A DNA stretch of 64,000 nt, taken from positions 27,218,001 to 27,282,000 of the forward strand of contig OZ249441.1 of NCBI GenBank assembly GCA_965235115.1, in the 5' to 3' direction. The notes beneath the pieces are model-generated. The model was not told the origin of the DNA and did no database searches. It was given only the letters and a program-made list of their open reading frames with translations. Of this stretch, positions 7,261-64,000 are shown piece after piece (position 1 is the stretch's first letter; each line of letters begins with the position of its first letter). A program made the translations under genes and the position numbers. The stretch is from Laetmonice hystrix. Its lineage: Eukaryota.

Positions 7261-9937
7261 ATGGGAGCGGACACTGACCCGCCGGCCATCGTACTCGACA
7301 CGGCTGGCGGCACCTGTAGGGCGGGAGTGGCCGGGGAGCCAGCCCCGCGGGTCGTCTTCCCTGCCGTCATTGGATACCCCAAGTTTAAGGTATTGAACTG
7401 CCTTCCAGCGTTCTCTAACACAATACGCTACGGTGGTCAAAGATTTATCTATATACAGCCCCCTGTAGGCCTATATTTGAAAAAGTAGTAGGCCTACATG
7501 AAAATCAAGAATATCATGATTGGCGACATGCATATATGAATAGGCCTACACATCGCATGTGCATGTATATAGGACTAATAAGGCGATTGTTGTGATAGGC
7601 CTTATATCGATGATTGTTAGCCTTACCTTGGAGTTACCATATGAAAGACAAAACTCGCGTCAGATCAAGGCGATATATCGATCGTTGCGCTATGTGTTGA
7701 GATACCTGGGGCTGGAGAATGTCGCGATTAGTTATATCATTAAAGAGCATGGCCTTTAGCATCCGAATTTTCATTGTTTAATGTCCCAATATATCATTGA
7801 ATTCATTTTAACCAGCCGCTGACCGGCATTGATGGGCGACCTTATATCGGTCAGACTGCCACCCGCCACCGGGGGATCCTAACCCTCCACCGGCCCATCA
7901 AGGAAGGCCTCATCACAGACTGGGATCACATGGAGGCCCTCTGGAGCCACGCCTTCCACCATGAGCTTGGCCTCAGCCCCGAGAGCCACCCAGTCCTAAT
8001 GAGCCTCGGACCATTCATGAGCCGGGAGAGCCGGGAGCAGCTGGCTGAGGTGATGTTTGAGAAGTTCCAGGTCCCAGCCGTCGCCCTGGTCACTGAGCCG
8101 GTACTACTGACGGAGGCCCTCGGCCGGACCACCGCGGTCGTCGTCTACGTGGGGTACGACCTATCGTACGTGGTGCCTGTCTATGAGGGTGAGTTGGTCA
8201 GGTATAGGATGGCTAATTTGATTTCACAACGTCATCCTAATGGTACCTAGTTAATTCACTTCTATTCTGATGGGAGGGTTGTTTCGAATGATTCTAATGG
8301 GATGGCGAACTTTTTATATAATCCTTATAGGTTTTCTTTTTAAAACGAGAAGCCTCCATTTTTCATTTGCTATATTCCCTCAGGTTACGCACTGTTACAT
8401 GCAGCGGATCGTCTCGATGTTACTGGAGAAGATGTGAGAGACTTTCTCTCGCGAAGTCTGGTACCGGAGAGAGGCGTTTGGTTCGGTTCTCAATGTGAGT
8501 TGGATTTATAACCTATACATCATTATACTACAACCATGCACTAGATTATAGATCTATACAGTTAGGTCGGTTTAGTACACAGGACCGTAGCCAGGGGGTT
8601 GGGTGTCTGACCCCCCGTGCCAAAGAAAAAAAATCATTGGTCTTGAAATTCACCAAAATGCACTTAAATTTTAACATTTTTCAGGGTGCATGCCCCCGGG
8701 CCCCTTAGCTTCGCACTTGCAGTGCTCGCTTTGCTCGTTTTTTTTTTTATACATAATTATTATTTCTGTAACCCCCTGCAACAATCAACCTCCGGCTACA
8801 GCCCTGCAGCTATTGATGGTATAGGCCTAGAAGTACTAAACGTGTAGGCCTGTATGTCCTGAACTTCTGTTTTCGAATACACCGAATACCAGTAGGCCTA
8901 TACATGTACTAAACCCCTTTCAGTATTCAGAGATTAAAATGATAATTCTGTGGACACAACAGGCAGCGCCAACCTGAAATACATTGAAAGCTCGCTATGT
9001 TACGTGGCCACTGAATGCCAACAGCAGACGATGGGGCCCTTCACTACGCTGTCAACGATCGGCCACGAATATCTACTCCCAGACGGTTCGAAAGTCAGGG
9101 TCGGTGACGAGCTGTTCACCTGTCCCGAGGCCCTCTTCAAACCAAGTCTCATAGGTATGTAACGTGTCTTCGGTATATGGTGATATCCGTGTCAATATTC
9201 TTGGGGCGGGTACAGGATCGTGCATGCAATGCCCAGAGTTGGAACCCATATAGCCTACTATAAGTTTATTTCATATAAATACCGGGATATTTATGGACAG
9301 ATCCCCCCATGGTAACTTCCCAATGGGGGAACTCAATCTGCGACACCATTCCTACAAGCCCTGCCCTCTGTACCTGATGAGACTGTATATCATAGAAGTG
9401 ATCACTAGGCCAACAGGCTGACACGTGTTGATGTGTTCTGTGCTTTCATTCAGGGAAACACGTGACCGGGATTCACGAGTCGGTTTATAATGCGGTCACA
9501 AAGTGTGACCGTGATATCCACCACGATCTGTACAGTAACATACTGCTGTTCGGGGAGTCGTGTATCTACCCCGGTACGTTTATAGTTTCTTTCTTTCTTC
9601 CCCTCTTCCTTTCTCATGTCCTTTCTTTCTTCCCTCACATTTGCTCTTTCTTTGTTTTCTTTCTTTCTTCCCTTCTTCTTTCCTTTCGATCGTGTTTTCC
9701 ATGTGATGACAGGCGTATTTCCATGTTGCAGGGTTGGTGCCGAGAATGTCCAAGGAGGTGGCCGCAGTCTCCTGTCATCCCACTGTCAGGGTAGTTGGTC
9801 CGCCCGAGGTGGCCTCAGACTCGGTGTGGCAGGGAGGTTCCATCATCGCCTCTCGTCCCACTTTCCCTGACATATGTGTCACTCACGCCGAATATGACGA
9901 GGTCGGACCTCGCATTGTTAATGTCAAATGTTTCTGA
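7261..9937 (+). CDS. Divergent actin-like protein 1 (376 aa)
   Basis: Exons 7261-7389, 7816-8188, 8384-8494, 8963-9154, 9454-9573, 9732-9937 total 1131 nt in frame. Actin-fold motifs: VFPAVIG, RGILTL, WDHMEALW, GRTT, VPVYEG, LCYVA, LPDG, CPEALFKPS, SVWQGGSIIAS, EYDEVGPRIVNVKCF. Confidence 0.93.
8580..8806. mobile_element. Non-autonomous TIR element (CAGG..GTAGCC type) in intron 3 of actin-like 1
   Basis: Imperfect inverted ends CAGGACCGTAGCCAGG / CCGGCTACAGCCCTG. No clear TSD. Confidence 0.5.
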
Positions 9938-10635
9938 TGACGTTTATGATAGATCATAGATGTGTAGTGATCCTACACATCTATGGATAGATCTAAATAT
10001 AGATCTATTCTTTTTGTATCAAATTCTCCTGCGAGGCTCGACGAAATGAACAGTTTAAAAGACTACGCTGTGCAATATATGCCTCACAGAAACCTGCAAA
10101 TATACCTTATTTATTTTATGCTGCATTTCCTCATCATGTGTTAACAGATGTACCTTTGTTTTGCCAACCTGCTCTTAAACATGCAGGCCGTGTTTAGGAA
10201 TAAAGGTCGAGTAGACCATCGTTAGAAATCTCAAGTAACTTCAGTTTCGTTTTCTCGGCGTTTTCCTTATCTCTTGAGGTTATCACCAGATAAACATTTT
10301 CAAAGGCACGATACGCCATGAAGAAGATTCTTATCAAGAGGCAACAACCATAAAATATGACAACTGGGAGTTCCCCTCATATTTCCCGTTATCTCGCATG
10401 ATAACACTGCATGGGGAAAGGAAAGTAGTATGCAGTCCGTAAATATATCGTTCAGTGAGATCATATTTCCGAGACGTGTCTGTAAAGGGAAGTACAGTTG
10501 TACGTAATTAAGATGCACTTGATACCACGATGTACTTCTTGCAAGGTATACGGAAGTACTTAACACTATTTTATCACTTATATAAGTGTAAAAAGCTCAC
10601 AGTAGCATTCAGATTGATCCCGACTGGACACTAGA

Positions 10636-13221
10636 ATGGACGAATCTAGACCTACGCTGGTCGTCGACCAGGGGACTAGTGCCTGGAGGGCAGGCCTTTC
10701 TAGTGTTCAGCAACCCGAAAACATTCCCTGCGTCATCGGAACTCCAAAATATCAGGTAAGGGCCGCCTCTTCTGTTCGAGGGAGCTACTTGATCAGCTCT
10801 AGACTGACTTAACTTTGGTATTTACATAGTCTGGTCTAGATTCAACATACTTTATACAACACGATAAAAATCCACACACAAAAGAGAAGGAAAGAAAAAA
10901 GCGAAGAAAAAGAAAAATTGCCTTGTCTTTTTTTCCAGTTGCCCTCACAGCCAACTCATTACGTAGGTCAGGAGACGTGGAGAAACGCCACACTGAAGCT
11001 GGATTACCCGATGGTTTCCAAGGACGGAATCGTTACCAGAGATACCCCCATTGACACTGACCTCCAGCTGCTATGGAGCCACGCCCTGGACACCCTGAAG
11101 TTAGACCCCACCGAAAACGATGTCCTCTTGGCCGAATCTGTTTTTGAAGCCAGGAAGACGGGCGAGGCTAATGTGGAGATTCTCTTTGAAACGCACGGCA
11201 TCCCCCGGCTGAATATAGCTCCTCGACCGTCCTTAGCATTGCTCGGGTCTGGTAGAACGACGGGAATAGTTCTTCATGTTGGTCATAACAAAACAGTTAT
11301 TGCACCAATTTATGACGGTAAATATGAGGTTCAGCTAATCTTTTAGTAACCGGCAGTTCCTATAGATCTACACATTATCTGGTATCACTAATTTTTTTTT
11401 CAGTAAAAATATATACCAGATCCCTGAGGCGGCCTAACCGGCCGGGTGGTAAAAATGCATGGTTACCTTTTAGGGCGTTGTAATGATGATTTGTTTACGA
11501 TAAATGGCTCAGGTGCATGGGAAGGACAGACATTTTGGATCGCATACAGGTATTTCTCAACACCTCTTCCTCTTCTCTTTCAGGATACCTTCTGCGCGAT
11601 GCGATCGTCTCGTTCGTGGTCGGGGGAAGGCACCTGACTGACGAGTTCGTTGACCTTCTCCAGAAGAGAGGGACCGACCTGACATCAACGAGTAGGCTAA
11701 CGATTTAATATTTCTCGTCGTTTGGTGGGGAGACGCTATCATAATTATAGGCCAGGAGTAACATATCTCTGTCAACTTACCGATCCGACTAAACTCGATT
11801 CCGCCAGTCGGTCCACATTGTTTTTATGTTTTGAAAACTATAACGCCTCCGCCCGGTTCCATTCAATGACAATGTCCTTGACTCCATTCAATCTGCCCCG
11901 CCCCGAGGTAACACTACACACATTAAAGGCGCAGACCCCCTAAACAAACAGTTCATTATTTTGTTCTGACAGGCGGAGAGGTGGAACTTGCACGTCGGAT
12001 CAAGGAGTCCCGGTGCTATGTGGCTCTTGACTTCAATCATGAGATCGATGTCCCCGAGACTATTGAAAATGTGGCCGTCTACCGGATGCCGGACGGATCA
12101 GAGATAGACATCGGTCACGAACAGTTCCGATGTCCGGAGGTTCTCTTCCAGCCGCCAATGAGAGGTAGCGGACCTTAACACTGGCTGTCATAAATAGGGA
12201 CAACATATACCGATAGGTGGCCACACCAGTCTATAAGGCTGGATTCCACTAAGCCGATTTACATCCGATCGGCCATCCGATTTTCTTAACTTCTGAAATT
12301 ATTGGTAATTTGTGTCATCAAATCATTAAAGGACATTTAATTTGTAAAGATTAGATATATATTTTTCGTCGGCCGCAAATATCAGATATATTTGATCGTC
12401 AATCGGATGGTCGATCGGATGTAAATCGACTTAGTGGAATCCAGCCTTAACGGCGGTATTCGTTGTGCTGGCCTAGTTGATCGTAAACGCTTGTAGCAGT
12501 GCGAATTAGGCTAAAATAATATGGTAAAAGCCTAAATGGGATTTAAAGTGATAATTTTACTCTATAGATTATTTCAAGACATTTTAGCATAATCAGTGGC
12601 CAGGCCATTGTTGTCATGTTTCCCAGGTTTTGATTCTGACGGAGTAGACAAGATGCTGTTTGCGACAGTTCGAAAGTGTCCAATTGACCTTCGATCAGAA
12701 CTTTCAAGAAATATTATTCTCTCTGGTGGAACAACAATGTTACCAGGTCAGTGCGGCGTTGTTTCTTCTTTCTTTCTATCTTTCTTTTTTATTTCTCTTT
12801 TTTTTAGCAATAGCAAAATAAATGCTAACTGGATCTTCAGTAGAATTAGGCCTACACAGGGCCTACTTATAAAGGCTATGTAGCCTATAAGGCTGATATT
12901 TTGGATGATTTCTTCATCTAGGAAAAGAACGACAAAGAGCAAAATGCCCGTTTGAACTGTATCAACATAATAATGAAACCAAAATGTCTCGCTTTTTGGT
13001 CAGGTTTCGTGGAGCGTCTAACGACTGAAATGGCAGCACTCTCAATGAAGAAAGGCACACGGAACACTTTCCGTATCTCAGCGGCTCGGCAGCCACAATT
13101 CGCCACCTGGCGGGGAGCAGCCATGTTTGCAGGGACCCCATACTTTAAGAATGGATCTATTTCACGCCAACAGTATGAAGAGACCGGGAAAAGTGCAGCA
13201 TACGACCATTTTTGTTTATGA
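10636..13221 (+). CDS. Divergent actin-like protein 2 (378 aa)
   Basis: Exons 10636-10755, 10939-11317, 11584-11691, 11973-12164, 12627-12746, 13004-13221 total 1137 nt in frame. Motifs: LVVDQG, GRTTGIV, APIYDG, IKESRCYVALDF, MPDG, FRCPEVLFQP, KCPIDLR, ILSGGTTMLPG, TWRGAAMFA. Confidence 0.93.
12236..12447. mobile_element. MITE with 47-bp TIRs in intron 4 of actin-like 2
   Basis: The left end AGGCTGGATTCCACTAAGCCGATTTACATCCGATCGGCCATCCGATT is mirrored at the right end with 2 mismatches. TA flanks both sides. Confidence 0.85.
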
Positions 13222-13288
13222 GAAAGCAAGAAACTACGAGTGATTCCGTTTTGAATCAGGCGTTGACAACATTGTTGAATGTGAGCTG

Positions 13289-13383
13289 GTCTGGTTCGCC
13301 CTTCCACCGCTCGATGGCTCTGATGGTCGCTTGCTTGTAAGCGACCATCAGAGCCATCGAGTGGCGGAAGGGGGAAACCAGAC
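13289..13383. mobile_element. Near-perfect ~95-bp palindrome (hairpin MITE) in the presumed 3' UTR of actin-like 2
   Basis: Stem of ~44 bp, GTCTGGTT...GATGGTCGCTT paired with AAGCGACCATC...AACCAGAC, closed by a 6-nt loop. Confidence 0.75.
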
Positions 13384-27790: not shown

Positions 27791-29097
27791 AGGCCTACTT
27801 AAAACAAGGTTACCTACCGAAAAAGAGCATTGGACGACTTTTAGGGAGGCACGTGCGCGACCACTTGCATTCTTTAAAATATGAAATAAATTAAAATAAA
27901 TATATTAGACATTTTTAAATTGTAATCGCCGCACATTAATGGCGTTCTCAAACCAACATTACGTAAAAAAGACGTCGAGAGACCGCTTGCCCGGCTTGCA
28001 CGTGTGTTTAGCGTTGTATATTTTCTAACCGTTTTGTGGAACCTTTCGTTCTGGGTGATTTAATTAAAGACACATATCCACATAGGCCATTGTCCTTGAC
28101 GTCCATGAGATTTTGACATCATCCTTTTATTTAAGTGGGATTTTGAGGATGGAACCCATTTCCAGAAACAGGGAAGGCCTTCCATGAAAAATTACAGAGT
28201 GAAATTCCACCATTAAATCATAAATCGTATGGCAGTCGCAAGGAAAATCGCCAATGTGGACATGGGCCGTTACCCTGCGTGTCCTTCAGGTGGAAAATCG
28301 GCGCGTAACGTTCATGGTACCATGAGGCACGCCACACACCCGGGCAACTATCACTTGATATAGATATGACTCATAAGCACACAGTGCCCCCGCTTAACCC
28401 ATTTAAAAAACGCTTCTCTCAAAATCACCATTTGATGGGGAAGCATTTCGTGACGCAACATACAAGATGTATAACTACAAGATGTATCACATATCTTAAT
28501 ATAAATCAGATCAGATTTAAATATACTTGGTGTCGGTGTTCACCATGTGATACTTATAATAAATTGCAAAGATGAAGTTTTGAGGGGCTGAAGACGGGAG
28601 TAAGAGCAGACATGGGCACATTCAGGCATTCAGAATGTGGTCATAGTACAAACGAATGACAAAGGGAACCCATCTCCTGTCGTACTCTCCTAAACCAGCT
28701 CGAACCTAGAACAATGATCACAGATCACAACTACAATGTAGTATGTAGACCACATAGCTTTATGTAATGTAACGTAATGTGCATGAACCTTTCTTAAAAC
28801 CTATCACTTTAAAAAAAGGCACACATACTATTATAATATAGCCTATAGGTAAATGAATCCCTTCCTGCATGGATATGCCACCAGGACCTAAAATAAGCAT
28901 AATGTCTACATTTTTTTAGTGGAGTCATGGTCCATTCTGCATCCCCCTCTTTTTGTAGACTTTCACATGGTACTATATTCCGATACGATCGTCAATATAA
29001 GTGTGTTCATGGATAATCACTCTCAGACCAACAGAACTTATTCCATGTTTTACCGTACATACTTTCAGATTGTTGCGGTTCTCTCCAATAAGAAACC

Positions 29098-30404
29098 ATG
29101 ATGATAGGACTATCATCTCTACACCCACTGATTGCGCTTGCACTCGGTAAGTTAGGTGATACATAGAAAACCTTTTATTATTGTCTAGCGGTAAAAACAC
29201 GCGAGTCTTAATGGAAGCGGTCACCTCACCCGCTGTCCATTGATGAAGTCGTTCTGGGTAGAGCTATTTATATTGAACAACATTCTCCCCTCACGACTCA
29301 GTCGTGGCTGACCGACTCCTCGATGGCAAGAGGCTGTCGATTGACCTGATTCCCCCGCCCTCCGCATGGCTGACCGATTAATTGGCCTTCGCACGAGGGT
29401 CCAGTTTCTGAAAACAGTTTTTGCTTAATCTTATCGCTTCTGCCTGGATGGTTTTGGAAAACCTGGCCCAGGCCGCCACAGTTGGGATGAAACGTTCCAA
29501 ACTTTCTCATCTTCTCGTAACTTTAGGTATATTGTCTGAAAGAGTGGCACGCCTGTGATCGCAAACACATCACGTGCTTGCCTATTCATTGATCCGTCTT
29601 TGTAAAGAGTTGTTTTGTTTTATCGCCAGGTTGCAGCGTCCTATTTGTAACTGGACAAGAAGTAGAGAACTCCCGATATTGCCAGTCACCCCCAGATTGT
29701 AGCACATCTAATGTCACGGCGAGATGGCCCATGCGGGACAACTGCAGGAGATTCTACCGCTGCAATGGTGCAGGGAAATGGAAATCGAGGAACTGCGGCC
29801 AGCAAAAACATTTTGACATTTCAACCATGAGATGCAGGAACCCTACCAGAGCTGTGTGCTTGAGTTGCAATTACGCCGACGCCACGGACCCGGCATGCAG
29901 CCGCCCTTCAACATGTCAATCTAACGATCGACTTCCCGATCCTGAAAACTGTCTGAGGTTCTATGTTTGCACCAATAACCGGTGGTTGATTCGCGACTGT
30001 GCTCCGGGAACGAAATACGACAAGTCGCGATCACGCTGTGACCATATAACTAACATGGCAGTCGTATGTCAACTGCCTTGTCCTGACCTGGCAATGGAAA
30101 CACCGACAACAAGTAATGTTAGTGTCCAACAGGAACCTGAAGTAACACCAACGACGCCCCTACCAACGACGCCCGTCCCAAGGGAAGTGGACCGACGCCT
30201 CGAGTGCAATCTGGGCAGTCTGCCCTGCACCACTGGTACGCTCCTCCCCTACCCTGGAGACTGCAATGCTTTCCAACTGTGCATCAATGGTGCTTGGCAC
30301 AAAGGTAACTGTAGGAACAAGTCCTTTGATTCGGCGACAAAAACATGTCGGCTCCCGCCAGTGGTATGTTCCCCTCCCTGCCGAGGAGTGTCAACTACAC
30401 AAGG

Positions 30405-30440
<36 letters not shown>

Positions 30441-33400
30441 AACAGCAACAACAACAACCACAACAACCACACCAGAACCCCAAAGCCCCATAGCTAAGTG
30501 TAAGGACATCACGCAGACGATGCCTTTAGAGGAATTATGTAACGCCACACATCGGACGGATCACTCGTCGTGTAAATTTGAAGGGGGCGTGGTCCTGGTA
30601 CACACCCACCCAGACAACTGCCGACAGTATTTCGTGTGTGCCGGGGCCAACTTTTGGGGAAGCGGGGCGTGTGCGCCTCGATACCGGTACGACCCCGCGA
30701 CGTGTTCCTGTAAACCTCAGTCGGAGGTCACTTGTAATCTGCGCTGCCATCCCCCCTCCAGTACTTCCCCAACTACCCCGACGACAACTACCACTACTAC
30801 ATCCACAACAACTCCACCCTCTACATCTTCAACGACATCCTGGCAAACTACTGCAGAAACGACAAGTACTACCACAACAGCTCCCGCAACATCATCATCC
30901 ACTACGACAACTACCTCGACGACGTACACGGCACCCACAACTTCAAGTCGGACGACTACGCCTGAAGTCACAAGCCGCACGCCCGAGCCTGACGTATCGT
31001 TTTCGCTGACGTCAAGAGCCACTACGTCATCAACCTCAACGTTCCCTCCATCAACCACAACAAGTCAGCCAACAACCTCGTCATCAACCACATCAGTTGT
31101 ACAACCCACTTCTCCAACAACGTCCGCAGCAACGTTTACACCCAAAGAAACAACTACAACCGTGTCAACTCCTAGCAAAACATCACCATCATCATTATCA
31201 TCATCGACCGCAACAACGACGATGACGCCAACAACAAGAACGACGGAGGGTAGTACGACCACCCCCTCTACCACAACTGGCGCCACCGCCACTGTGACGG
31301 CCGCGACGTCAAGCGTCAGCTCTGGGCCGAGCACAGGTTCTACCCCTGGTGCCACGGCCACAGGTACAACAACCTGGACAACTGGTCGCCTGCTTGTGGT
31401 GGCTACCTCTGCTGGGCCTGCTTGGTTCACCACGCCTAACACAAGTGCTGATAGTAGCTCCCCTCCTCCTACCCCTCCAACATCCCTTCACCCTGCTGTA
31501 GAAAATGCCACTAAAAGCATGCCCCAAGTCACAAGAATGCCTGATGCAGTTTCTCCTTCTGTTACTGGTAGTTCAACAACTGAAGTCGTTCCGACTTCTG
31601 ACGACCAGCCGACCGATATTGATGTAACAATGTCCGACTCGACCACAGGCTCTCTAACGTCCCAAGGCAGGACCAGTCCTGGCGCCACGACTGACACATT
31701 AACGGTAGTTCCCGACACAACTGAAACCACTCTCACCGACATCACATCCTCCACCTTTAGACCTACACCAGTAGGCCGGCTTGACGGACCAGACACTACC
31801 ACAGACATATCCCATCTCACAACATCAGAGACTTCTCATAAGACAAACCAGCCATTCACATCTCAGCCTACCTCCGAAGCAGCTGTAACGCTAACAGTCC
31901 ATCAAAGCACTGCCTATCTAACATCGCCTGACACAACCTCTCCCCCTGCCTCCTCCCCTGCCGTTACCCTCTCGACAGACGAACAGACGGTTTCCTTGCC
32001 TTGGCAGACGACAACCCTGAACCAAACTTCCCGCCCCGCCCATCCTCTGCCTGACGCGCCCTCTAGCGGTAGGCCGACGGCGTCCACGTCTTTGGCTCCC
32101 TCGTTGGTCACCACTAACGTCCTTGAGTTTGAGAACACCGGTGACATGACGAGCACTACCAGCTTCCCTCTTACTACGGCATTAGGTAAGGAAGCAAGTT
32201 AGTGTGAATTCTCTTACAGCTCAGGCTACCGTCATCCCCCTGTGTAAACAGCTCAGCTTTCAAGTGTCGGTAACTTAAAGCAAACGTGCCTCTGGCCCCG
32301 CGGATTTAGAAGGCTATAGCCATAGTACTTAATTTAGGTGCAAACCTGTCTAAGCCTTTACAGCCAGGAACAGGGCAAGCTTAGCGCAGGATCACTATAT
32401 TGTTGCATACAATTAAAAATAGCATGTTAACTTACGTAAATCTATGTAGAATGTATCGTAGGCCAAAGAATGATATTAGAATCTTGAATCCCACAATTAT
32501 CAATTGGCAATTGGGGAATGTTCAGGAGCAGTAGTTGCTGGGAACTTTGCGGGATCGCTAAGAACTGCAGATTTGCAAGTAGGGCTTATTGTTATATGTA
32601 TTTTAAAATCAAAGCACTAACTAAAATAAACCTCTTACAAAGTGGCAGCCTAACACGCTGTGTTGACGTACAGTGTGATCACAATGTGCGAAGGTATGAT
32701 AACATTTGCTATAATTGTCGCTGAACTCATACTACCGGTGTTGTACCTAATCCTATATACCTAGTGTGACGACAATGTTATCCCATATGTCCGTACTAGA
32801 CTATACCTCGTGGACCCTGGGTATAGAAAAGGCTACAATGTAACGCATACTAGCTTTAGACAAGCACGATATCGAGATTTTGGTCCAGTACCTTTTTATA
32901 TGTCTCCGACAATCATTTGGTATCGTGAATTTTGTATGCAACTACTAGTCTATAAATGCTTGGTGAAATGAACAGGCTCTGCAGCTTCTAACTGGATGCT
33001 GACCTCTGTGGCCTTGATGTGTCTATATGGATGCACTGTTTGGTCAAAGCGCGGCGCTCCTGACGCTTTTATTAGTGTATAGGTGTCGCTTCAGTTGACA
33101 CGTGGTTGAAAGTTGGCTGAGTCCCTGAATGTAAGCGCATGTAGTACTAGTACTTTTGTTACTGTACCATCACTGCTAGCAGGGTGAACATATTGTTTTG
33201 TATATAGTTATGTTCTTTTATCTCACTACATGTATCACGGTCATAATACACTTTTAGACTATCGCTTACATGTTATGCTACTGCATGTTTTATATGAGGC
33301 CTGACTTTTCGATGTACCGATCTGGACAAACATGAAACGTGCTTCAGTTCACCTATTATACATGTATAGACAGAGGCATGCATATATTGCGCATGTTTAG

Positions 33401-36400
33401 AAGTATAACTGTGACGATTGCATGGAAGTTTAGATCATGTTCAGGAAAAAGTCGCTGCACCATGAGGCCATATACCAATTGGTGGGAGTATCAAACTATG
33501 TTTACGAGATAAACACCATTGAATAATTTAAACGTCATATCTGTATTCCATAGCCCTAACAAATTTGCAGTCATTCACGTTACCATATTTATGACCTCAT
33601 ACAGTTGGGGTTTCTTTTAAATCGTGAGGTGTACCATATTTCTTTGCATACTTCATTGAATAACAACCGTCATCTTTTGACCTTTGAACTCCTTTCGTAT
33701 TGCCTTAGATAATCTTATTTTCTTTGCGGTGTTTGCTCTGTGAAGACTAATATGAATACCTCTCTGTCGGACAGATTTACCGACCCTGTGCATGTCGGAA
33801 GTGAGGGAAGGCGTCGACTGGCCCGACACACCCCGAGGGCGGACTCATCATCGGAAGTGTCCCGGCGGCAGGAAGGGTAACCTCTCCCATACTTTTCTAA
33901 CTTAACTCCTTGCTTAAGTTTAAAGCTCAGGACCCAGTTCGTAAAAACTTAAGATCTTGCTTAAGCTAAAGCTTAAAGCTTCTGATTGGCTGATCTACTG
34001 AGGCCAGCAAATCAGAAGCGTTATGCTTAGGCTTAAGCAAGATCTTAAATTTTTACGAACTGGGCCCTGATTAACTGGTCCGCTTATACTTAGGTTCCTA
34101 AAAAAGCGGACCCCGAAGGTCAAAGCACGATCCCAAGTATTGAAGAACTGGGTCCAGAACTTCTCTTGAAATTGAATTCTGAATATTTATTAGGGGTCGC
34201 TTAAAAAATCAGCATACTGAATGAGGAGGGGGTTTAGCGTATACAGGGCCCAATGTGACACTGATCCATTACAATTGTACCTTGCAGGAAACATCAGCCG
34301 AACTTGTCGTTTTCGCCCGGGTGTGGGCGCACAATGGGACAAGCCTGATGGCCGATTCTGTGTGGACGTCCGGTATCAACAACTGATGCAAGAGGTGAGA
34401 ACTGCACCGTCATGCCGACCCCAAGCCATTTTGAAATTTGGTCATGGTAAAGTTTGACCCAGAAGACGCAGGCAATAGTCCACACAGTTATATGGGTTCA
34501 GCAGAAAAGATCAGATCAAGGGGTCCTGCCCCCCCCCCCTTGCAGGGCCGTCTTGTCTTGCCTGATGGGGCCCTTGGAAAGCCTCAGTGACAGGGCCAGC
34601 TTAAGGCCTGGTTGAGCCTTGGGCAAGCCTCAGTGATTGGGCCCCCCTGGACCTGGGCCCTGGGCAAGTGGCCCGTTTCCCTATGGCTAAGACGGCCTGT
34701 CCCCTTAGCCTCAATAAATTATTTTCTCATGGAGTATAACTCTCGCTCATATGATTTCCAGGTGGATTCGCTGAGCAATCAGCGGGACGATCCCATGGGG
34801 TCCCAGAACTCGGGTATGAAGGCGTCAGCCCAACTGAACCGGTTGACGGCGACCGAGACGGTCAGACCGAGAGGTATCCAGCCCGGGAACCTCAATGCTT
34901 CCGTTCATATCTTCGATATGCTCACCACGCTGGCCACCAATAACACATCCATGGATAATGTGGAGGTCAGTACCCAACCCTGATCATCACCAAATAAAAC
35001 TTGTTGGAATATTATAAAATATTTCTGCCGATATCTATACAATTATTCCTACACCATATTTCACAAATCCTCCGGTATACAAAGGGATAGACCTCCCCTT
35101 TCAACTGTACATTAGTAGAGACAGTGACGTGTTTTAACACGAACGGTTAAATTGGTATAGGATATTATATGAAGGGACTCAGGAGAACCTAATATTTTGA
35201 CTTATCGTCCACTCCTAATGTGGCATGGCCCATTCCTTCCTTCCCCATAAATTCGACACTGTAGACCTGTGTAAGTAGTGTATAAAATGAGGATGTTTGC
35301 TCATGAAGGCTCTTTGTTCCACAGCTGGACATCCTGACCGGAGCAGCCAGCAACATGTTGTCTCTGAAGAACGAGAACGGTTGGAACACCCTACAAGAGG
35401 TGGGTCTACACACTGGGCCCGATTTGTTGTCTAAACTTAGGTTGTCACGCTTCTATTTGGCTGGTCAAAGCAGACCAGTCAGTTTTTACTAACCATCAAT
35501 TCATGGTAATTTCTAGGCACAAACCATGACGTGAATGAACGTAGCACGGTCAATCTGTGGGGGTTTTCGTTTTGTTTTTTGTTTTGGTAATTCATGCAAG
35601 ATTCTGAATAAACTTGACTGCCAAACTAAAGATCTATTTGATTACCTGCAGCGGGACCCTTCCCGGAGCGTGAGTCTGATGTCGTCCGTGGACCGTATTG
35701 GGGAGGCCGCCGCTCTCAGTATGCCACCTGGCCAACGTATCATCGAGGCTCAGAACCTCCGTAAGTTATCCTTCACCCATCACAGCGTTAACCAGAGCAG
35801 CTTAGGTTATAAGCAGGTTCTTATCTGTAGCATCAGAATAGTGGTTGAAACGTATATGAGATACTGATTTTGTTGTTGTTTGTGTCTGTTTTAAGAAATC
35901 CGAGTTGAGGTTATCCCAAAGGAAGACGCAACCCAGTTAGAGTTTGCACCTCCGAACCAGCATGGCCGGGATACTGGGCCTTCAATGCATGATCGCGTCA
36001 TGCTGGAAAAGGCAACCGTAGACGCCCTGGGAGAAAGTGAGACATTTTCCTAACTCGAATCTCAGAGATATACAGTTGAAAAGAAAATCACCAGTTAAAG
36101 CCGCATGCCTGTATGTCTCTATATATTTTGTCAAATATTCACATATTTAAAGGGATGCTATGAGATTACAATACATTCATTAGAAATGTAATGGGTGCTT
36201 ATCCGATAATCCTTTGACTCCCCTCAGTGGTTCCCGGCGACAACCTGGCCATTTGGAGCACCCACTTCCAAACGCTCCATCAACTTCTCCCAGTAGAAGA
36301 GTAGGTGCTCCTCTCATTCTCATGTCACTGATATCATTAATGTGGCTCTGGTCTTCCGTTTAATTGTTAAAAAAATCAAGGACTCTGACATCATTTCAAT

Positions 36401-39400
36401 AGTTAACCATATTCTCTGAAATGTGTAGGTATAAGTCTAATACTAAGTAATGTTATGGCTAGGTATCAGGACCGAGGCCCCTGCTCCTTGGAATTCACTT
36501 TTCATTTGTTGAGCCCCATTTTTAGATTTCCATCTTGGACTCACTGCCCTGTCCCAAATTCTGGGTCCACCCCGGACGTGTAGTTAACATCTTGATTAAA
36601 TGTTGCAGTGATGACATGATCAACTCGAACATCATATCGGTTAGCGTCAAGAGCCTACCGGACGGTACAAACTTGTCCCCACCAATCAAATTGCAGTTTT
36701 CTTCACTCAACGTAAGAATTAATTCTTTCTAGACAATTATCCAATAGAGATTGCTCCTCAACAATCTCCATCATTATTGAGTGATTAGTCGTCGTATTTG
36801 AGGTGATTTGTTATCACAGACTTTCATGTTTCAGACATCGGCTACAAGTTACGAAGCCGAGTGTTCATTCTGGCAGTTCGCCGACACGGAAAATGAATTC
36901 AATGGGTATGCCTTTTCCATTTTGTCACTTCAATTATAATTGTTTCCCGCATGATGAGAGGCGGTCAGGTCGAACTCGGATAGATAATATACGACACGAA
37001 CGCTGAGAAACGTTTTGACATAAACCTCACCGTCTATAATTGTCAAGTTGTGATTATCAGTGGGTGTTATGCTCCCATAGTGACTAAGTGTTGAAGGCTG
37101 ACCACGTTGTTTGCCTTGCTTCCTGTCAGGGGCCGATGGTCAGACATGGGTTGTGAAACCGTCTTCAGTAATTCCACCACCACCCTGTGTGCGTGTAACC
37201 ATCTCACAAACTTCGCCGTTCTTCTCAGCCCCCACCAAGCCGTACGTATAGCATGACCCCAGGCCCAGTTTTGTAAAACTTCAGTTATTGCTTAAACTTA
37301 TGCTTAATATGACGCCTCTGATTGGCTGGTCTGGTTAGACCAACCAATCAGAAGTGTTAAGCTTAAAGTTAAGCAACAACTTAAGTTTTGAAAAACTTGG
37401 ACCAAAACTATTTAACTGTTCTAATCAAATCCGCATTTTGTGTTCCTCTCGACGAATGATTTGTTTGAAGGCCGAGACGTCTGAAGGTTTCTCAGTGTTA
37501 TATTGTTGTCCCACAGACTGGCCTACACGCCACCATTCTGACCATCATCTCGGTCGTGGGCTGTCTGATTTCAATCCTCGGTATGATTGCAACCATCTGT
37601 CTCTACATCGTCTCATGGAAGTAAGTATACGGTCCACTTATAGAAACAATTCTCTTTTCCATGGAAGTGCCAGAACATTTTGTTGTAGCAATATCATAGA
37701 AGTAAGTCCGACTCTCCTTCGAAATAATTATTCTGTATACCCTCTCATGGAAGGTGTCAGTTCGCATGGACTTCTGCACACATGATGTCCTGGAAGTGGG
37801 TATTGCTTCATTCAGCGCCCCACATGACCAATGCCCAACTCTCTTTACAGGAGAATCAAGTCTCACCACGCGGCGGTACTGATCAACCTTTGCGTTGCAC
37901 TCATACTGGCCAACGTAACCTTCCTGGCTGGCATCGATAGGACTGAAACAAAGGTGAGGAACCCACCAAACTGTTCAGTAGCACTGAAGTATACGGTCCC
38001 CTTCATATCTATCATAACTGCAACAGGCCTGAAATACAGTTTCCCAAAGGCATAGCTGTATTTAGTACAAAGTCGTGCACAGCATAGATTGAGATATCTT
38101 CTTCCATTCCACACAGATGATCTGCACGGTTGTTGCGGCACTACTTCATTTTTTCTACCTCGCCGCCTTTTTCATCATGTTCGCTGAAGGCATCCAGTTT
38201 ATTCTCTACGTCGTACAAGTGTTTCACGTTCGTCGGAAGAGGGAGACCTTGCTACTGCTCATAACGTCGTGGAGTAAGTCATGTTTACACAGCTAGCGGC
38301 CCAAACTTTAAATACTTAATATCGCTGAAGCTTAGAATAACGCGTCCGATTGGCTGGTTGCCCTGGTCAAAGGAAATTACCATGTGACTTGCCATTGACA
38401 AAGATTTACAAAGATAGATGAACATATTGTAAAAGAATTACTTTCCACCAATCATTCTGGTGTACCCACTTACACCGAAGATGATGGCCGTACAATGGGA
38501 GGATTGTTACTTGTGTTCACCATTGTAAAACTGATTTTGACTTGGTACAGTTCTTCCTGGCGTGATTGTGGGCGTCACCATGAGTATAACTCGTGGCGAG
38601 GGTTACGGTACAGAGGATTAGTGAGTATCAAAGTCCGGAGTAGACTTTCTCTCCTTATCCTAACATTGTAAGTTCAAATAGTAAGACTTAACAGCCAATT
38701 GAATCACTGTGATTCAGCGCTATTCAACTTTGTTCGATAACCAGTCTTATAAAGGCAACGATTATACCATTATCATAGCTAAATGGAAATGGATAAAAAA
38801 ACAATTGATCAATCTATATTGTATGAAATATTCCCGTTCTCTTGTTCCCAGTTGCTGGCTTCGTAAAGATACAGGTCTCATTGCTGCGTTCGCGGTGCCT
38901 GCCATGGCTGTGATCATCGTAAGTTTAGAACCAACAGTTCTGATATAGCGTAGAAGAGCATTTATTCACTCACTCAGTATTCACAACCCCAAACCTTCGA
39001 CCCCCCCCCCCTAAAAAAATATTTTTGACAGTAAATTATCCCTGACCGATCAATAACTAACAAAATGTCACCTAATTGCAGGGCAACTTCGTCATTTTAT
39101 GCAAGATTCTACATACTATTGCAAATTCTAAAGGTTCTGAAAAGACCAACAGAGTCAAGTAAGTAGCATTTACGCATAGAATCGAACTTAAAAAACCGAA
39201 TGAAATTACTAAAGCTTTAAAATCTCTTTAGACAATTTAACATATTTTTATGTTAAATTTTCCTTTGTTGTTTGCAGGGCAACAATCTGGAACATTGCCG
39301 TCATGATGCCGCTGCTTGGTTTGACATGGGTATTTGGCCTATTCTCAGTCAGCGAAGCAACTATATCTTTTCAGTACATTTTCGCCGTATGCAACTCTTT

Positions 39401-42277
39401 ACAGGTACAAGGTTTATCTAATGTTGTATTAATTTTTTTTTCATCGTACAAACTCTCCCTTTTTATTGCCCCACAAGCGCCTATACTTCTCTCTATATAA
39501 ACTAGACTATTCTCACGTTCATCCCGACATAGACTGCCTTTTTTCATAATTTGAAATAATCACTTTAGATTTCTAAACATCCTGACCGTTAAGTCAAGAT
39601 CCGTGTCACTGATCAATATGATTTGCTTTTTCTAGTATTATTGATTTAAGCCTGCTTCCTTACGCATGTTTCATGCGTAAGAAATCTATTACAGTATAGA
39701 ATATATAAGATATAACATTTACATGTTACTGTTTATCTGAATTGCAGGGCTTCTTCATTTTCTTCTTCCACTGTGCCCTAAACAAGAAGGTACACCCATC
39801 TGCATACTCTATTTGATTACCTTCAGCTAGCTGAATCAACAGTTATTATCAACACTTCCTACATCGTTTAGATGGGAATACCTCACAACACAATCCTCAT
39901 AGCCTGATAACATGATCAGGGTTATTGCGTTTCAATTAGAATAATGGCTTGAAATATCATCACTACCCACTTTGTTTCAGATGCGAGAGGCAGTGGCCGA
40001 GCGTTTTAGTTCGCGCTATAGTCAAAATTCAAGTCTTCGTAAGTCTGGTGGGTGGAAATCGAATAAATCACAAAAGGTACGCTTTCTGCTTAAATCTAAC
40101 AATGTACCTACTCATTCATCGCGGTGGAGGGGGGGGGGGCTTAAAAAATCAATAAATAAATAAATATATAAAAAAATCAATCAATTAAAATAAAATAAGT
40201 TTTAGTCATTTTTAAAAGTTAGTGACATACGGGTAGCGTGTCGCTAGACATAAAAGTATCATTATAAACTAAAATGTCAACAACTTTCCTCAATCAGTCA
40301 TCCTAAATGACAATAATGACACTTTTACTTAAATGTATGGAAGTAGGCATAGATTGCATAAAAAAAATCTATTCAGAGTTCCAATAAGGGAAAAAGACAA
40401 TACAGAGGTTCGTATTAGTCTATTCTACCGAACTCCAAAGCGCTTGTAGTTAACCATACTATACCGGGGTATAGGTTACAGGCGCCTTAGTGCTTATAGT
40501 ATATCGGTACCGGATTATATGTTTTCCACATTATTATGTCTAAATACCCCGTACCAGAGGGACCCGACTGAGCATATTAGATGTCTAACAACTGCTTCTC
40601 GTTTAACATCATCTATAACTCTAACAAACCAACCATGGAGGAGGAATTTTGTTTAAACCTAGAAGCAAAACAAAATCTTACAAATTCAACAAAATCAGTT
40701 GTCTTCCAAGGCAAAAAATAGTGTGAAAGACGTATTAATTAGCAACTTACGGTTCGGGTGATCCATACAGGGAAGTCCTCGTTCGACAAGTCGGCACCGT
40801 AGTCAGTTCGACTTAAGTGCCTATAGTCAACAGCGACGCGGAGAACTGACTATAATGTCCCAACTTGTCTAACTAGGAAATCCATCTCATATCTTCTTTA
40901 ATAGCAATCGTAGATTGTCTTAAGGCCGGCTGTGGTGTTACTTCTGGAATTCATTAGAGAAAATAGTTCTGCTTTAACGGGCTGGTATTGCAGGGTGACC
41001 AGAGCACAAGAAAAACTTGACTTTAACCAAGAAAAAAAAAAGGTGCGTTCAAATGATTGCGATCTGATTCAAGATGGCTACCTGGCCGCAATATTTGACT
41101 ATATCACTGATATAGGCCTATGATCAAAAGGAAAATCTATGAAGGGGCAGGGAAAACACAGGGAATTTGAAAATGAAATTTGTGTGGTCACCCTGTATTG
41201 TTTATTTTGCAAATGTTACTTCCGCTTTAATAGCACAAACATCAATATGAATATTTTCTACCTGTCATAGCCTACCTGTAATTATTACTTAATATGCCTT
41301 CGAAATAAATACTAAAAAACATTTGACAGATGCAGTATCGAAAATGTACAAATGAAAGGCCTGATAAATCCATGATACTAAAAAATTAAATTATTCTAAA
41401 ACATTGTGTTGTCTAAAATTAAGTCTAAATCAACGCTGAAAGAAGGTGCATTAAGAAGAGTGCTTTATGGAGGGAGAGTGTTTGTCAGTAACAATCAACA
41501 TCCATCCATTAACGCTTCTTATTGGCTGGTCTGCTTCGGCCACCTTAAGCTAAAACAAGATCTTGAATCTTTTAAACGCGGGCTCTGGTGATACGAGGAC
41601 ATATATTCTGCTAGGACTACAATTATTGTGCTCAGTAATAGTTATAAACAATTCTAATGATGACTTGTAATGATGACAGAATGAAGAGGGTTTCCTATCA
41701 GACATCTGATCCATTGTTTGCATTCTTTCAGAAGAAAGGAGACGACAAACCATTCAACAAAAAATCGACCCAGAAAAAGAAAATGGGAAAGCGAACTCAA
41801 AAAGAAATGGAAAGCTTAAACCATCAATCGCATTACCCTCGCATTACTATGGAGCAGCAGACCCCGTTCAACCCAATGGAAACGCCGAATACCTACGATC
41901 AGACGAACTTTACCGATCCAATGCACAATTTCAACTACTCGATGAGCCCTACAGCGACAAAGAAACCGTGCCACTACCAACAAAACAGTCCAAAAGTGAC
42001 CGGAAAAGATCCCAACAGAAAAAAATCAAACCAATTAAATCATCAAAGACGGTCTGAGACATCCGAAGGTAGTAGATCCAGTTTATATAATTATAAATAT
42101 AACACGAAGGAGAAAGGCAATGCATACATTGTATTCGAGCCGGAATACATGGAAATCGGCCCCACGACGCCCCCTGTCGATGAAGAGGGGATTTACATGT
42201 CAATAGACAACATTACTCATCCGAGTTCCCAATATACCCTGCGACCGGAGGACGACTGTCAATCAGGGCTGGCATGA
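29098..42277 (+). CDS. Adhesion GPCR: signal peptide, 4 chitin-binding type-2 (CBM14-like) domains, Thr/Ser mucin stalk, HRM, GAIN/GPS, 7TM, cytoplasmic tail (~1696 aa)
   Basis: 22 GT-AG exons: 29098-29146, 29630-32185, 33775-33876, 34288-34394, 34762-34965, 35325-35399, 35652-35760, 35896-36036, 36228-36300, 36609-36711, 36835-36905, 37130-37241, 37517-37620, 37851-37953, 38117-38273, 38551-38620, 38852-38918, 39082-39158, 39278-39404, 39748-39789, 39981-40076, 41732-42277 (5091 nt, in frame). GPS: CSFW...WSDMGC...CACNHL|TNFAVLL. Family-B TM motifs: LINLCVAL, HFFYLAAF..AEG, CWL, PLLGLTWVFG, NSLQGFFIFFFHC. The last exon link is the least certain. Confidence 0.92.
30404..30468 (+). repeat. (ACA)n coding microsatellite giving a poly-Thr run in the mucin stalk
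   Basis: ACAACAACAACATCAACAACA... inside the large exon 2. Confidence 0.85.
33927..34070. mobile_element. Palindromic MITE with paired CCAAT-like cores
   Basis: TIRs TCAGGACCCAGTTCGTAAAAACTTAAGATCTTGCTTAAGC / GCTTAAGCAAGATCTTAAATTTTTACGAACTGGGCCCTGA; internal CTGATTGGCTG...CAGCAAATCAG. Confidence 0.85.
34543..34699. mobile_element. hAT-like non-autonomous element
   Basis: Ends CAGGGCCGTCTT / AAGACGGCCTG, similar 8-bp flanks CCCCCTTG / TCCCCTTA, and an internal direct repeat AAGCCTCAGTGA. Confidence 0.6.
37260..37403. mobile_element. Second full copy of the CCAAT-core MITE family
   Basis: CAGGCCCAGTTTTGTAAAAC...CTGATTGGCTGG...CCAACCAATCAG...GTTTTGAAAAACTTGGACC. Confidence 0.75.
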
Positions 42278-61487: not shown

Positions 61488-64000
61488 TCACGGTGTAGTC
61501 ATTTTCTGAGGCTTCACATAGATCAGGTTAGAAGAGCCCTTTGTCGCACTTTGCATCTTGTTGCTCTGATCGGGAGGGGTTCTGTCCTCAGTTTTCTGTC
61601 CCTCATTCTCAGGCCCCTGATTTGGAGGGTCTTGCTGGGATGCACTCTCAGCAATTTTCAGACTCTGATCAAACAAACATTCTGGACGCTGGATTCTGAT
61701 CAGCAGTTGCCAAGATGCCAACAGACACATTGCACCAGTATTGTTCACATGGACCCCATCACGCCTATAAAGGCAACTGTCGTGCCAATTGGTGTTAACG
61801 TCATGATCAATAATGAAATACTTCAGCCCACTCTCGCGCAGATAACGTTCCACTAAGCCATTTGCCTCTAAGCGAAGGTGTTCTGTCTTGTCAAACGTTG
61901 GGTTGACACCAAAGTTTCCGTGACGAACTAGAATATTGGACCAGACCAGCACGACCTCTGGTACCAACCTAGAGATGTCTTTGATCATCTGCTGAATGCT
62001 TTGATTGATCTTTTCTTGATCAAATCGTACCAGGTCCTCAGTTCCTACATGAAGGATCATCACTTCTGGTTTCAAGGGCTGGAACTTTTTTAGGAGGTCT
62101 TCCAGAGTTTTTCCCACAGATGAGAACTGCAGGGTTGGGTACGCTAAATAACGGATGCATGAATTGGATGCATTTTGGGTGAGACCATTTTGGCTGGTGG
62201 CCGCCATCTGGGTAACGAGATATATCGTGGCATCACCAAGAATCCACACCTGACGTCGTTCACTGGCTGTTTAAGTGCAAAAAAAAATCATTGATTATAA
62301 AGCATTGCCAAAAATTGCGATTAAAGAAAAACGTATACGCTCACAAGGTCACTCAATGTAAACGGAAATAGCGACAAATGAAACTTAATATGACTACCTT
62401 ACCTTAGTTTATAGACAGTATATGGTTACCTTATATTTAATCGGAACATTAATGTTTTTGAGATATCGCTGGGGTGGGGGCTAAAAACTTTCTATCCAAC
62501 ATTCATTGCAGGTATTATTTTCAGAGTTTTGGAGCCAGGACTCATTATTATATAATATGCAACCTTCACTGACCTTTCAAGGTCACTGAAAGTAAAGAAC
62601 ATTAGTTTTAAGATAAATATCTCATACGATTTCTAATTTGTGAATTACAGTATAACCTGCACCCTCTTGTTTTTTTTCAAGCTATAGGCCAAAATAGCAT
62701 GCGTTACATATTATGGAGAGGAAATAGAACAAATATGGCCATAAATTAGTGTAAAATGTCAACGTTGTATACACTTCTAGGAAATCACTGACCATGGCTA
62801 TACAGAAAAACGTAAGTCCAAACAGATGGATGTACGGATCGAAGACAAATCGTACTCCCCTTGAAATTGATGGCTGACAGCAAATCCTTATTAGACAGTT
62901 TCCCACATGAACAATAACATTTCCTGAGACGTCAAATTATATTCTGTATTCCCTCTTTCTCAAAAAGATGCCATACAAAAATGTTTCCTTACGTGTCATA
63001 TAATCAAAGTTACAACACATGTCCATAGAATTATATTATATACTTACAACCCTTTCCATTCCAGAGCAGCAGTGGTGGCGGAATGTCGCTCTCATCAAGC
63101 CTCGTCAGGGCAGTTTGTAGTTTTCCACCAGTCCAACCTGGCTTTTTATTTTCCTTAACAGGCCAATCCTTTTCGCGCGTATATTCCACCTTCTCTTTTA
63201 TCATGGCTCTATATGCTGCAGGATTATTCAGTTCCTCCGCAGATATACGCGACGTCTGAAAAGGAAGCATTGCTTGCCTTTCTTTTCGACTAGGCTTTGA
63301 TCCTTGGGAACCAGGCATTGGTCTTTGTGGTCCGGGTCCTTGTGGCATTGGATCTTGTTTTCTGGTCTCATGTGGCAGTGATCCTTGTGGACTGTCCCCA
63401 TGTGGCATTGGCCCTTGCGGACCGAGCCCATGTGACACTTGTCCTTGTGGACCTGGCCCATGTGGCATCGGTCCTTGCAGACCTGTCCCGTGTGGCATTG
63501 GTCCTTGTGGGCCTGGCCCATGTGGCATTGGTCCTTGTGGACCTGGTCCATGTGGCATTGGTCCTTGGGGACCGGGCCCATGGAACATTGGTCCTTGTGG
63601 ACTGGGCCCATAGGGCACTGGTCCTTGTGGACCAGGCCCATGGGGCATTGGTCCTTGCGGACCAGGCCCATGTGGCATTGGTCCTTGGGGACCGGGCCCA
63701 TGGGGCATTGGTCCTTGGGGACCGGGGCCACATGGCATTGGTCCTTGTGGACCGGGGCCACCTGGCATAGGTCCCTGGGGACCGGGTCCATATGGCATTG
63801 GTCCTTGTGGACCCGGCCCAGGTGGCATTGGTCTGGGTGGCATAGGGCCACGAAACATTGGTACAGGTTGCATAGCCCAAGGTGGCATAGCCCTAGGAGG
63901 CATTGTTCCTGGGGGCATGGAGCGAGGTGGCATTGACCCAAGTGGTATAGCCCCAGGCGGCACAGCTCCTGGGGGAAAAGCCCCTGGTGGCATGGCTCCA
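61488..64000 (-). CDS. Pro/Gly/Met repeat protein with C-terminal SGNH/GDSL hydrolase-like domain; 5' end beyond the window
   Basis: Exon >64000-63048 (donor T|GTAAGT, phase 1) joins in frame to exon 62266-61488 (acceptor TTAAACAG). SGNH blocks VWILGDAT, ILHVGTED, VWSNILVR, DGVHVN. AATAAA on the minus strand at 61277-61282. Confidence 0.85.
63310..63993 (-). repeat. Coding tandem repeats: 17 x 30-nt GPGPQGPMPH units (63310-63819) preceded by ~11 MPPxx pentapeptides
   Basis: Read directly from the translation; the repeat explains the overlapping ORFs called in the other frames. Confidence 0.9.

Follow-up and report, generated by a model that had tools for sequence, protein, structure and literature searches.

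Latrophilins (CIRL; ADGRL) are G protein-coupled receptors (GPCRs) of the adhesion class that consist of a lectin-type module (Gal_lectin/RBL, or olfactomedin), a Ser/Thr/Pro stalk, an HRM domain, a GAIN domain with the cleavage site HL|T, the sequence TNFA[VI]L, and a seven-transmembrane (7TM) domain of the 7tm_2 type. In latrophilin/CIRL and in the general model of adhesion GPCRs, the receptor cleaves itself and displacement of the outer fragment exposes a tethered agonist. EGF-TM7 receptors (ADGRE: EMR/CD97) have small disulfide-rich repeats on a mucin-like stalk preceding GAIN. Peritrophins and invertebrate intestinal mucins contain CBM14 domains with Thr-rich linkers. A 64,000-nucleotide stretch of the Laetmonice hystrix genome (the window, C6:27,218,001-27,282,000) contains a gene at 29098-42277 that can be compared with all three. 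It most likely encodes four CBM14-type modules on a glycosylatable stalk, followed by a latrophilin-like adhesion receptor.

This gene has the parts of a latrophilin in the same order, but four CBM14 domains are found in the position of the Gal_lectin/RBL or olfactomedin domain. With the EGF-TM7 receptors it shares the arrangement of small disulfide-rich repeats on a mucin-like stalk, although those receptors carry EGF repeats, whose ligands are proteins or glycosaminoglycans, and have no HRM. The peritrophins and intestinal mucins include the nearest database proteins to its exon 2, yet they are secreted matrix proteins that have no HRM, GAIN, or 7TM. Unlike in the peritrophins, its Pro/Thr/Ser (PTS) region has no CBM14 at its end and shares its reading frame with a receptor core. 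The literature that was searched, including GPCR-repertoire and review papers, did not describe an adhesion GPCR with chitin-binding, peritrophin, ChtBD2, or CBM14 domains.

The gene at 29098-42277 is real. It spans about 13.2 kb on the + strand and contains 22 exons that encode 1,696 aa in a single open frame. The model was built by manual reading of the DNA and checked with a script, in which all 21 introns were GT-AG and in frame. The encoded protein contains, in order, a signal peptide, four 8-Cys CBM14 domains, an O-glycosylatable Ser/Thr/Pro stalk of about 480 aa, HRM, GAIN, 7TM, and a 200-aa tail. An open reading frame (ORF) of 869 codons at 29593-32199 (+) holds the CBM14 and stalk region. 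The features are as follows.

29098 to 29146, + strand: exon 1, with the ATG and the first 16 signal-peptide codons; donor GTAAGT, phase 1.
29630 to 32185, + strand: exon 2, 2,556 nt, phase 1-1, with the remainder of the signal peptide, four CBM_14 domains, PTS linkers, and the stalk; donor GTAAGG.
29680 to 29865, + strand: CBM_14 domain 1 (8-Cys unit), Pfam 32.1 bits, E=1.3e-7.
29896 to 30081, + strand: CBM_14 domain 2, Pfam 45.6 bits, E=7.8e-12.
30205 to 30381, + strand: CBM_14 domain 3, Pfam 30.4 bits.
30538 to 30747, + strand: CBM_14 domain 4, Pfam 24.9 bits.
30757 to 32185, + strand: mucin-like stalk, 476 aa (T 32%, S 18%, P 11%).
32186 to 33774, + strand: intron 2, a candidate 3' untranslated region of a secreted short isoform; stop at 32200-32202.
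33775 to 33876, + strand: exon 3, first half of HRM, phase 1-1; Pfam HRM E=2e-4.
34288 to 34394, + strand: exon 4, second half of HRM; joined to exon 5 in sequencing run X4.
34762-34965, 35325-35399, and 35652-35760, + strand: exons 5 to 7, part of GAIN subdomains A and B (exons 5-11).
35896-36036, 36228-36300, 36609-36711, and 36835-36905, + strand: exons 8 to 11, the rest of GAIN subdomains A and B.
37130 to 37241, + strand: exon 12, GPS, with HL|T at 37200-37208 and the tethered-agonist sequence TNFAVLLSPHQ.
37517-37620, 37851-37953, 38117-38273, and 38551-38620, + strand: exons 13 to 16, part of the 7TM domain, 7tm_2 type (exons 13-20).
38852-38918, 39082-39158, 39278-39404, and 39748-39789, + strand: exons 17 to 20, the rest of the 7TM domain.
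39981-40076 and 41732-42277, + strand: exons 21 and 22, cytoplasmic tail and stop.

The start (ATG 29098) and stop (42275-42277) given in the initial annotation are correct in the checked model, and the CBM_14, HRM, GPS, and 7tm_2 profiles that it had expected were all matched. It had also placed four Cys-rich repeats of CBM14 pattern, more than 500 aa of Thr/Ser/Pro, and an intact HL|T site and TNFAVLL. Each of these was recovered; the 476-aa stalk passes 500 aa once the two inter-domain linkers are added. The signal peptide is normal once exon 2 is joined, with its hydrophobic core crossing the exon 1/2 junction. Exons 21 and 22 are the least certain part of the model, and the tail that they encode has no family match in Pfam. 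No second copy of the receptor gene was found within the window.

The four CBM14 domains can be recognized individually. Scored singly at the coordinates first proposed for them, all four exceed the Pfam CBM_14 gathering score of 22.1 bits, and exon 2 as a whole gives CBM_14 four times (E=1.3e-25). Each unit has the six standard cysteines and an extra flanking pair (C-x5-7-C ... C-x2-4-C). By inspection, the aromatic positions FY.C, W, and [FY]D are retained in every domain. In the ectodomain ahead of HRM, Pfam gives CBM_14 only, and a Gal_lectin/RBL domain was not found there. An AlphaFold2 model of domains 1 and 2 had a mean predicted local distance difference test (pLDDT) score of 86.4. Foldseek matches of this model were all CBM14 proteins. 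They include Aplysia EHEP, Der p 23 (TMt 0.80), and tachycitin, and further the CBM14 of human chitotriosidase (CHIT1) and Avr4 bound to chitin hexasaccharide. A PDB sequence search agrees with this result. EHEP, which has three CBM14 domains, was the top structural match and is the nearest solved multi-CBM14 relative by sequence and fold. As modeled, the domains appear to possess the tachycitin/CBM14 fold.

The stalk has a Ser+Thr+Pro content of 61% over its 476 aa, which is the PTS richness of a mucin-type region. It matches no Pfam family and has no tandem-repeat organization; Tandem Repeats Finder (TRF) detects only a 67-nt (AAC)n run. It ends without a C-terminal domain or anchor, as would be expected of a linker. 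One haplotype has an in-frame 3-nt deletion at 31705 in the stalk, while the haplotype indels in intron 2 are of 2 nt (32951) and 1 nt (33526). This difference indicates that exon 2 is coding and nothing more.

Downstream of exon 2, Pfam was run on single exons. The GPS exon gave 48.7 bits (E=1.1e-12) and has the pattern C..FW...W..GC...C.C.HL|T, with the four Cys, two Trp, and H-x-[ST] site by which an adhesion GPCR is recognized. The H-x-S/T motif is the cleavage motif of adhesion GPCRs (PMC13062082). About 283 aa of GAIN lie between HRM and GPS (exons 5-12). Single exons matched 7tm_2 with E=4.5e-7, 1.3e-5, and 5e-4 (29.8, 25.1, and 19.8 bits; the cut-off is 20.6). Transmembrane helix 6 (TM6) has the motif PLLG.TW and TM7 the motif NSLQGFFIF. 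Among solved structures, the TM3 and GPS exons best matched ADGRL3, and TM6-7 best matched ADGRD1, followed by ADGRL3; all of the best solved 7TM matches are adhesion GPCRs. Two features expected of a latrophilin are present: HRM lies immediately ahead of GAIN, and the Stachel is of latrophilin type (TNFAVL). HL|T and TNFAVLL are the sequence prerequisites of the predicted autoproteolysis and tethered-agonist activation.

The genome possesses a second gene of this kind. Genome-wide searches covered 627 Mb in 35 contigs, and the TM3 exon as query found two relatives. The closest paralogue is on the same chromosome, 17 Mb away, at C6:10,446,000-10,468,000 on the minus strand. Its identity to the window gene is 59% in TM3, 56% in TM6-7, and 46% in GPS, and its cleavage and agonist sequence is HM|TNFAIL. 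A tblastn search with the window model found CBM14-like sequence about 8 kb upstream of its GPS. The N-terminal region comprises ten successive exons, all in frame and with canonical splice sites. They encode, in this order, the last part of a signal peptide, three CBM14 domains, two immunoglobulin (Ig)-like domains, HRM, and GAIN-A. The CBM14 domains are of the 8-Cys type and each is interrupted by a phase-0 intron after a Y.Q motif. HRM is divided between two exons with phases and boundaries identical to those of window exons 3 and 4, and the GAIN-A exon has PGNLNASV in common with the window gene. Pfam gave E=3e-5 to 4e-3 for the CBM_14 halves, 7e-4 for Ig_3, and 2e-4 for HRM. Introns of only about 100 nt separate the last CBM14 exon from the first Ig exon and the last Ig exon from HRM, so the CBM14, Ig, and HRM parts belong to one gene. 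The two genes are alike in their 8-Cys CBM14 N-terminus, HRM phases, GAIN, H-x-T site, and 7TM core. The paralogue differs in having three intron-split CBM14 domains, and its two Ig-like domains replace the long mucin stalk.

The other relative lies at C2:44.56-44.59 Mb (minus strand). It has an exon of Gal-lectin type, a Thr-rich stalk, and HRM, and its GPS sequence is CKCNHL|TNFAILM. As this is a canonical latrophilin-like gene, the window gene is a paralogue within the latrophilin family and not the latrophilin orthologue. No CBM14-like sequence was found within 20 kb of four more GPS loci that have the same intron position. Across the genome there are at least 88 CBM_14 matches and 18 GPS matches, and, counting whole-domain matches, the two co-occur at the window locus only. 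Two large single-exon CBM14-mucin genes were also observed, at C2:25,651,800-25,655,700 and C2:45,511,000-45,513,000. One has highly regular ATTEQSTPTAATDT repeats between its CBM14 domains and the other has Gly/Tyr/Gln-rich repeats.

Relatives among public proteins were sought with the CBM region as query, and the receptor core was compared only to the CBM14 proteins retrieved. An exhaustive HMMER search (1.84 billion representatives) gave 444 matches with a best identity of 36%. A word-based protein search with the CBM region found two insect CBM14 proteins only, and words from the Thr runs probably swamped other candidates; with domains 1 and 2 it found one mollusc peritrophin. The ESM Atlas search gave peritrophin and mucin clusters only. 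The most collinear match, P0006, is a 1,526-aa ORF on a contig of 423,692 bp (ENA ERZ26052378). Its start resembles that of exon 2, and it contains nine CBM14 units of the 8-Cys type, PTS linkers, and a PTS tail of about 470 aa without an anchor. It is likely a homologue of exon 2 in another species. Two other proteins, P0131 and P0053, are on contigs of less than 1 kb.

Transcription of the locus was explored with reads aligned to 29000-34990. Four runs of one sample contain the locus and none is recorded as RNA; three behave as genomic DNA and one, run X4, behaves as RNA. In run X4, exon 4 is linked to exon 5 by a GT..AG joint (34392/4 to 34760/2), and a loose end at 34965 carries on into the opening bases of exon 6. 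The run gives no cover over introns 1 and 4 or over those parts of intron 3 that are unique. In exon 2, patches within 30231-31852 are covered at a depth similar to that of exons 4 and 5. Exon 2 and the spliced exons 4 to 6 are expressed, as seen in this RNA-like run. The initial annotation had exon 2 spliced in frame to the HRM exon. The sites and phases fit: exon 2 ends in TTAG|GTAAGG at 32185, exon 3 begins at 33775 after ...GGACAG, and both are phase 1. The junction from 32185 to 33775 is the part of that claim that reads do not span. The join is nevertheless accepted with good confidence, chiefly because CBM14, HRM, GAIN, and 7TM are found together twice in the genome. Two other products can be considered. 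Read through the exon 2 donor, the frame reaches a stop five codons on, and a putative secreted CBM14-mucin would end in GKEAS; such a short isoform ending in intron 2 is possible. Isoforms without exon 2 are also possible, since that exon is phase 1-1.

A mechanism can be proposed for the full-length protein. The receptor would cleave itself at HL|T. Its N-terminal fragment could then grip an insoluble matrix rich in chitin or GlcNAc, such as chaetae, cuticle-like layers, the gut lining, or food. Pull or shear would be transmitted by the stiff, glycosylated stalk, and the N-terminal fragment would be loosened or removed. This would expose the TNFAVLL tethered agonist to the seven-helix domain and possibly turn on G-protein signaling. 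By analogy with known systems, we infer all of the steps beyond the domain architecture, including chitin binding and mechanosensing.

Taken as a whole, the locus is best explained as one latrophilin-derived adhesion GPCR gene whose product is self-cleaving, bound to a chitin/GlcNAc matrix by its N-terminal fragment, and force-gated, and we favor this explanation with slightly better than even confidence. Several observations weigh against it. No read or contig joins 32185 to 33775, and X4 cover is zero at 32000-32199 and 33200-33799. Inside intron 2, X4 contigs of exon-like depth are present at 32253-32403, 32501-32650, and 33000-33183. The intron has the poly(A) signals ATTAAA (32412) and AATAAA (32625), and X4 cover ends near the latter. 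The RNA character of run X4 itself rests on its behavior, with no record of the library type. Among the best 150 or so of the 444 CBM-array matches, the receptor core was absent (local phmmer, 151 retrieved proteins), and Pfam found no GPCR parts in the five longest. Finally, a CBM14 fold is no guarantee of chitin binding, as EHEP illustrates. The intron 2 observations could possibly be accounted for by two genes, in which exons 1 and 2 encode a secreted peritrophin-like mucin (stop at 32200, poly(A) after AATAAA 32625) and the receptor starts within intron 2. The first two contigs lie directly upstream of that AATAAA, exon 2 alone resembles CBM14-mucin genes of the same genome and of arthropods, and a junction read is missing. 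However, a scan of intron 2 (32186-33774) for an alternative ATG with a signal peptide and a phase-1 donor gave weak candidates only, none of them convincing. Exon 3 has a stop just upstream and no in-frame upstream ATG, and so cannot start a secreted protein; it requires a phase-1 partner, for which exons 1 and 2 both qualify. The paralogue proves that CBM14 and a receptor core occur in one gene in this genome, and the stalk has no terminal domain. Two separate genes are thus quite improbable.

The same poly(A) signals and RNA cover in intron 2 would also fit a single unit in which exon 2 serves mainly a secreted isoform made by intronic polyadenylation, and the receptor is mostly a minimal HRM-GAIN-7TM protein made by splicing exon 1 to exon 3. 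Skipping of exon 2 keeps the frame, and extensive alternative splicing of adhesion-GPCR ectodomains is established. However, the hydrophobic core of the signal peptide would be only about nine residues long without exon 2, the CBM14 exons are fixed receptor parts in the paralogue, and contigs cannot give isoform ratios. This arrangement is considered improbable. A somewhat better case, still an unlikely one, can be made for a full-length receptor whose CBM14 domains bind something other than chitin (polyphenols, glycoproteins, or protein), in the manner of a cell-cell or food-chemical receptor. EHEP, the best solved relative by sequence and fold, binds a polyphenol (tannic acid) and not chitin. 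In addition, the window domains are a divergent 8-Cys variant, for which a search of the organism's own genome gave only the self-match at E<=0.001. Against a different ligand, the six core cysteines and, by inspection, the aromatics typical of chitin binding are kept in all four domains, and the number of CBM14 matches in the genome suggests an active chitin biology.

The latrophilin-like core proposed in the initial annotation is supported by the Pfam matches, by ADGRL3 as best solved match, by the TNFAVL-type Stachel, and by the CBM14-bearing paralogue. Its further proposal, that a peritrophin/mucin exon was shuffled onto this core, is only plausible. It is plausible because exon 2 is symmetric (phase 1-1) and intronless, as in the CBM14-mucin genes of the same genome. 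The paralogue also has CBM14, though, and the fusion may be older than the window gene. Among 47 CBM14 domains of the genome, those of the window gene and the paralogue are repeatedly mutual near-best matches. In a domain tree, window domain 2 (W2) groups with three paralogue domains (ultrafast bootstrap, UFboot, 90; SH-aLRT 81), which is not decisive. From these comparisons, the recent insertion of a peritrophin exon is no more likely than a common CBM14-bearing ancestor with later restructuring.

Other features were observed in the window and the genome. A miniature inverted-repeat transposable element (MITE)-like element is present at window 33925-34075 (intron 3) and also at about 37290-37400, 38300-38380, and 41500-41590. 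It has inverted ends of about 32 nt, a GCTTAAGCAAGATCTTAA core, and a CCAATCAG motif. Its DNA depth is about 15,000x, compared with about 70x in the flanks, which indicates a very high-copy repeat. Upstream of the receptor gene are UTP14-like exons (window 850-2918, + strand) and two tandem, divergent actin-like genes (window 7801-13382, + strand). A long open frame with Pro/Gly-rich repeats (GPGPQGPMP-type) is found at window 63034-63999 on the minus strand and extends past the window end. Large tandem arrays of histone H1 are located at C4:36.09-36.20 Mb and C20:6.82-6.94 Mb, with periods of about 4.1 kb and about 4.5 kb. For histone H1, the best named relative is from a nemertean (72%), and closer ENA relatives reach 83-90%. 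Twelve TGA codons interrupt the COX1 frame, and TGA encodes Trp in the mitochondrial code. These observations are compatible with a spiralian such as a polychaete annelid.

The window gene illustrates how evolution can place a different module at the lectin position of a latrophilin. Tentatively, it may belong to a small spiralian family of receptors derived from latrophilin, represented here by two genes on the same chromosome, in which CBM14 modules physically link a chitin matrix to G-protein signaling. These would then be the first GPCRs known to have a carbohydrate-binding module for a structural polysaccharide. Such receptors might sense force on, or the integrity of, chaetae, cuticle-like layers, or the gut lining, and a secreted isoform could serve as an optional decoy. 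To our knowledge, the outer-end ligand and the mechanism that turns pull into signal are still unknown for most adhesion GPCRs. If the proposal is true, an insoluble, chemically defined polymer as ligand, together with the long stalk, the intact cleavage site, and the tethered agonist, would provide a simple test system for the mechanical-activation model. It would also represent a previously unknown route for the sensing of an animal's own chitin structures or of dietary chitin.

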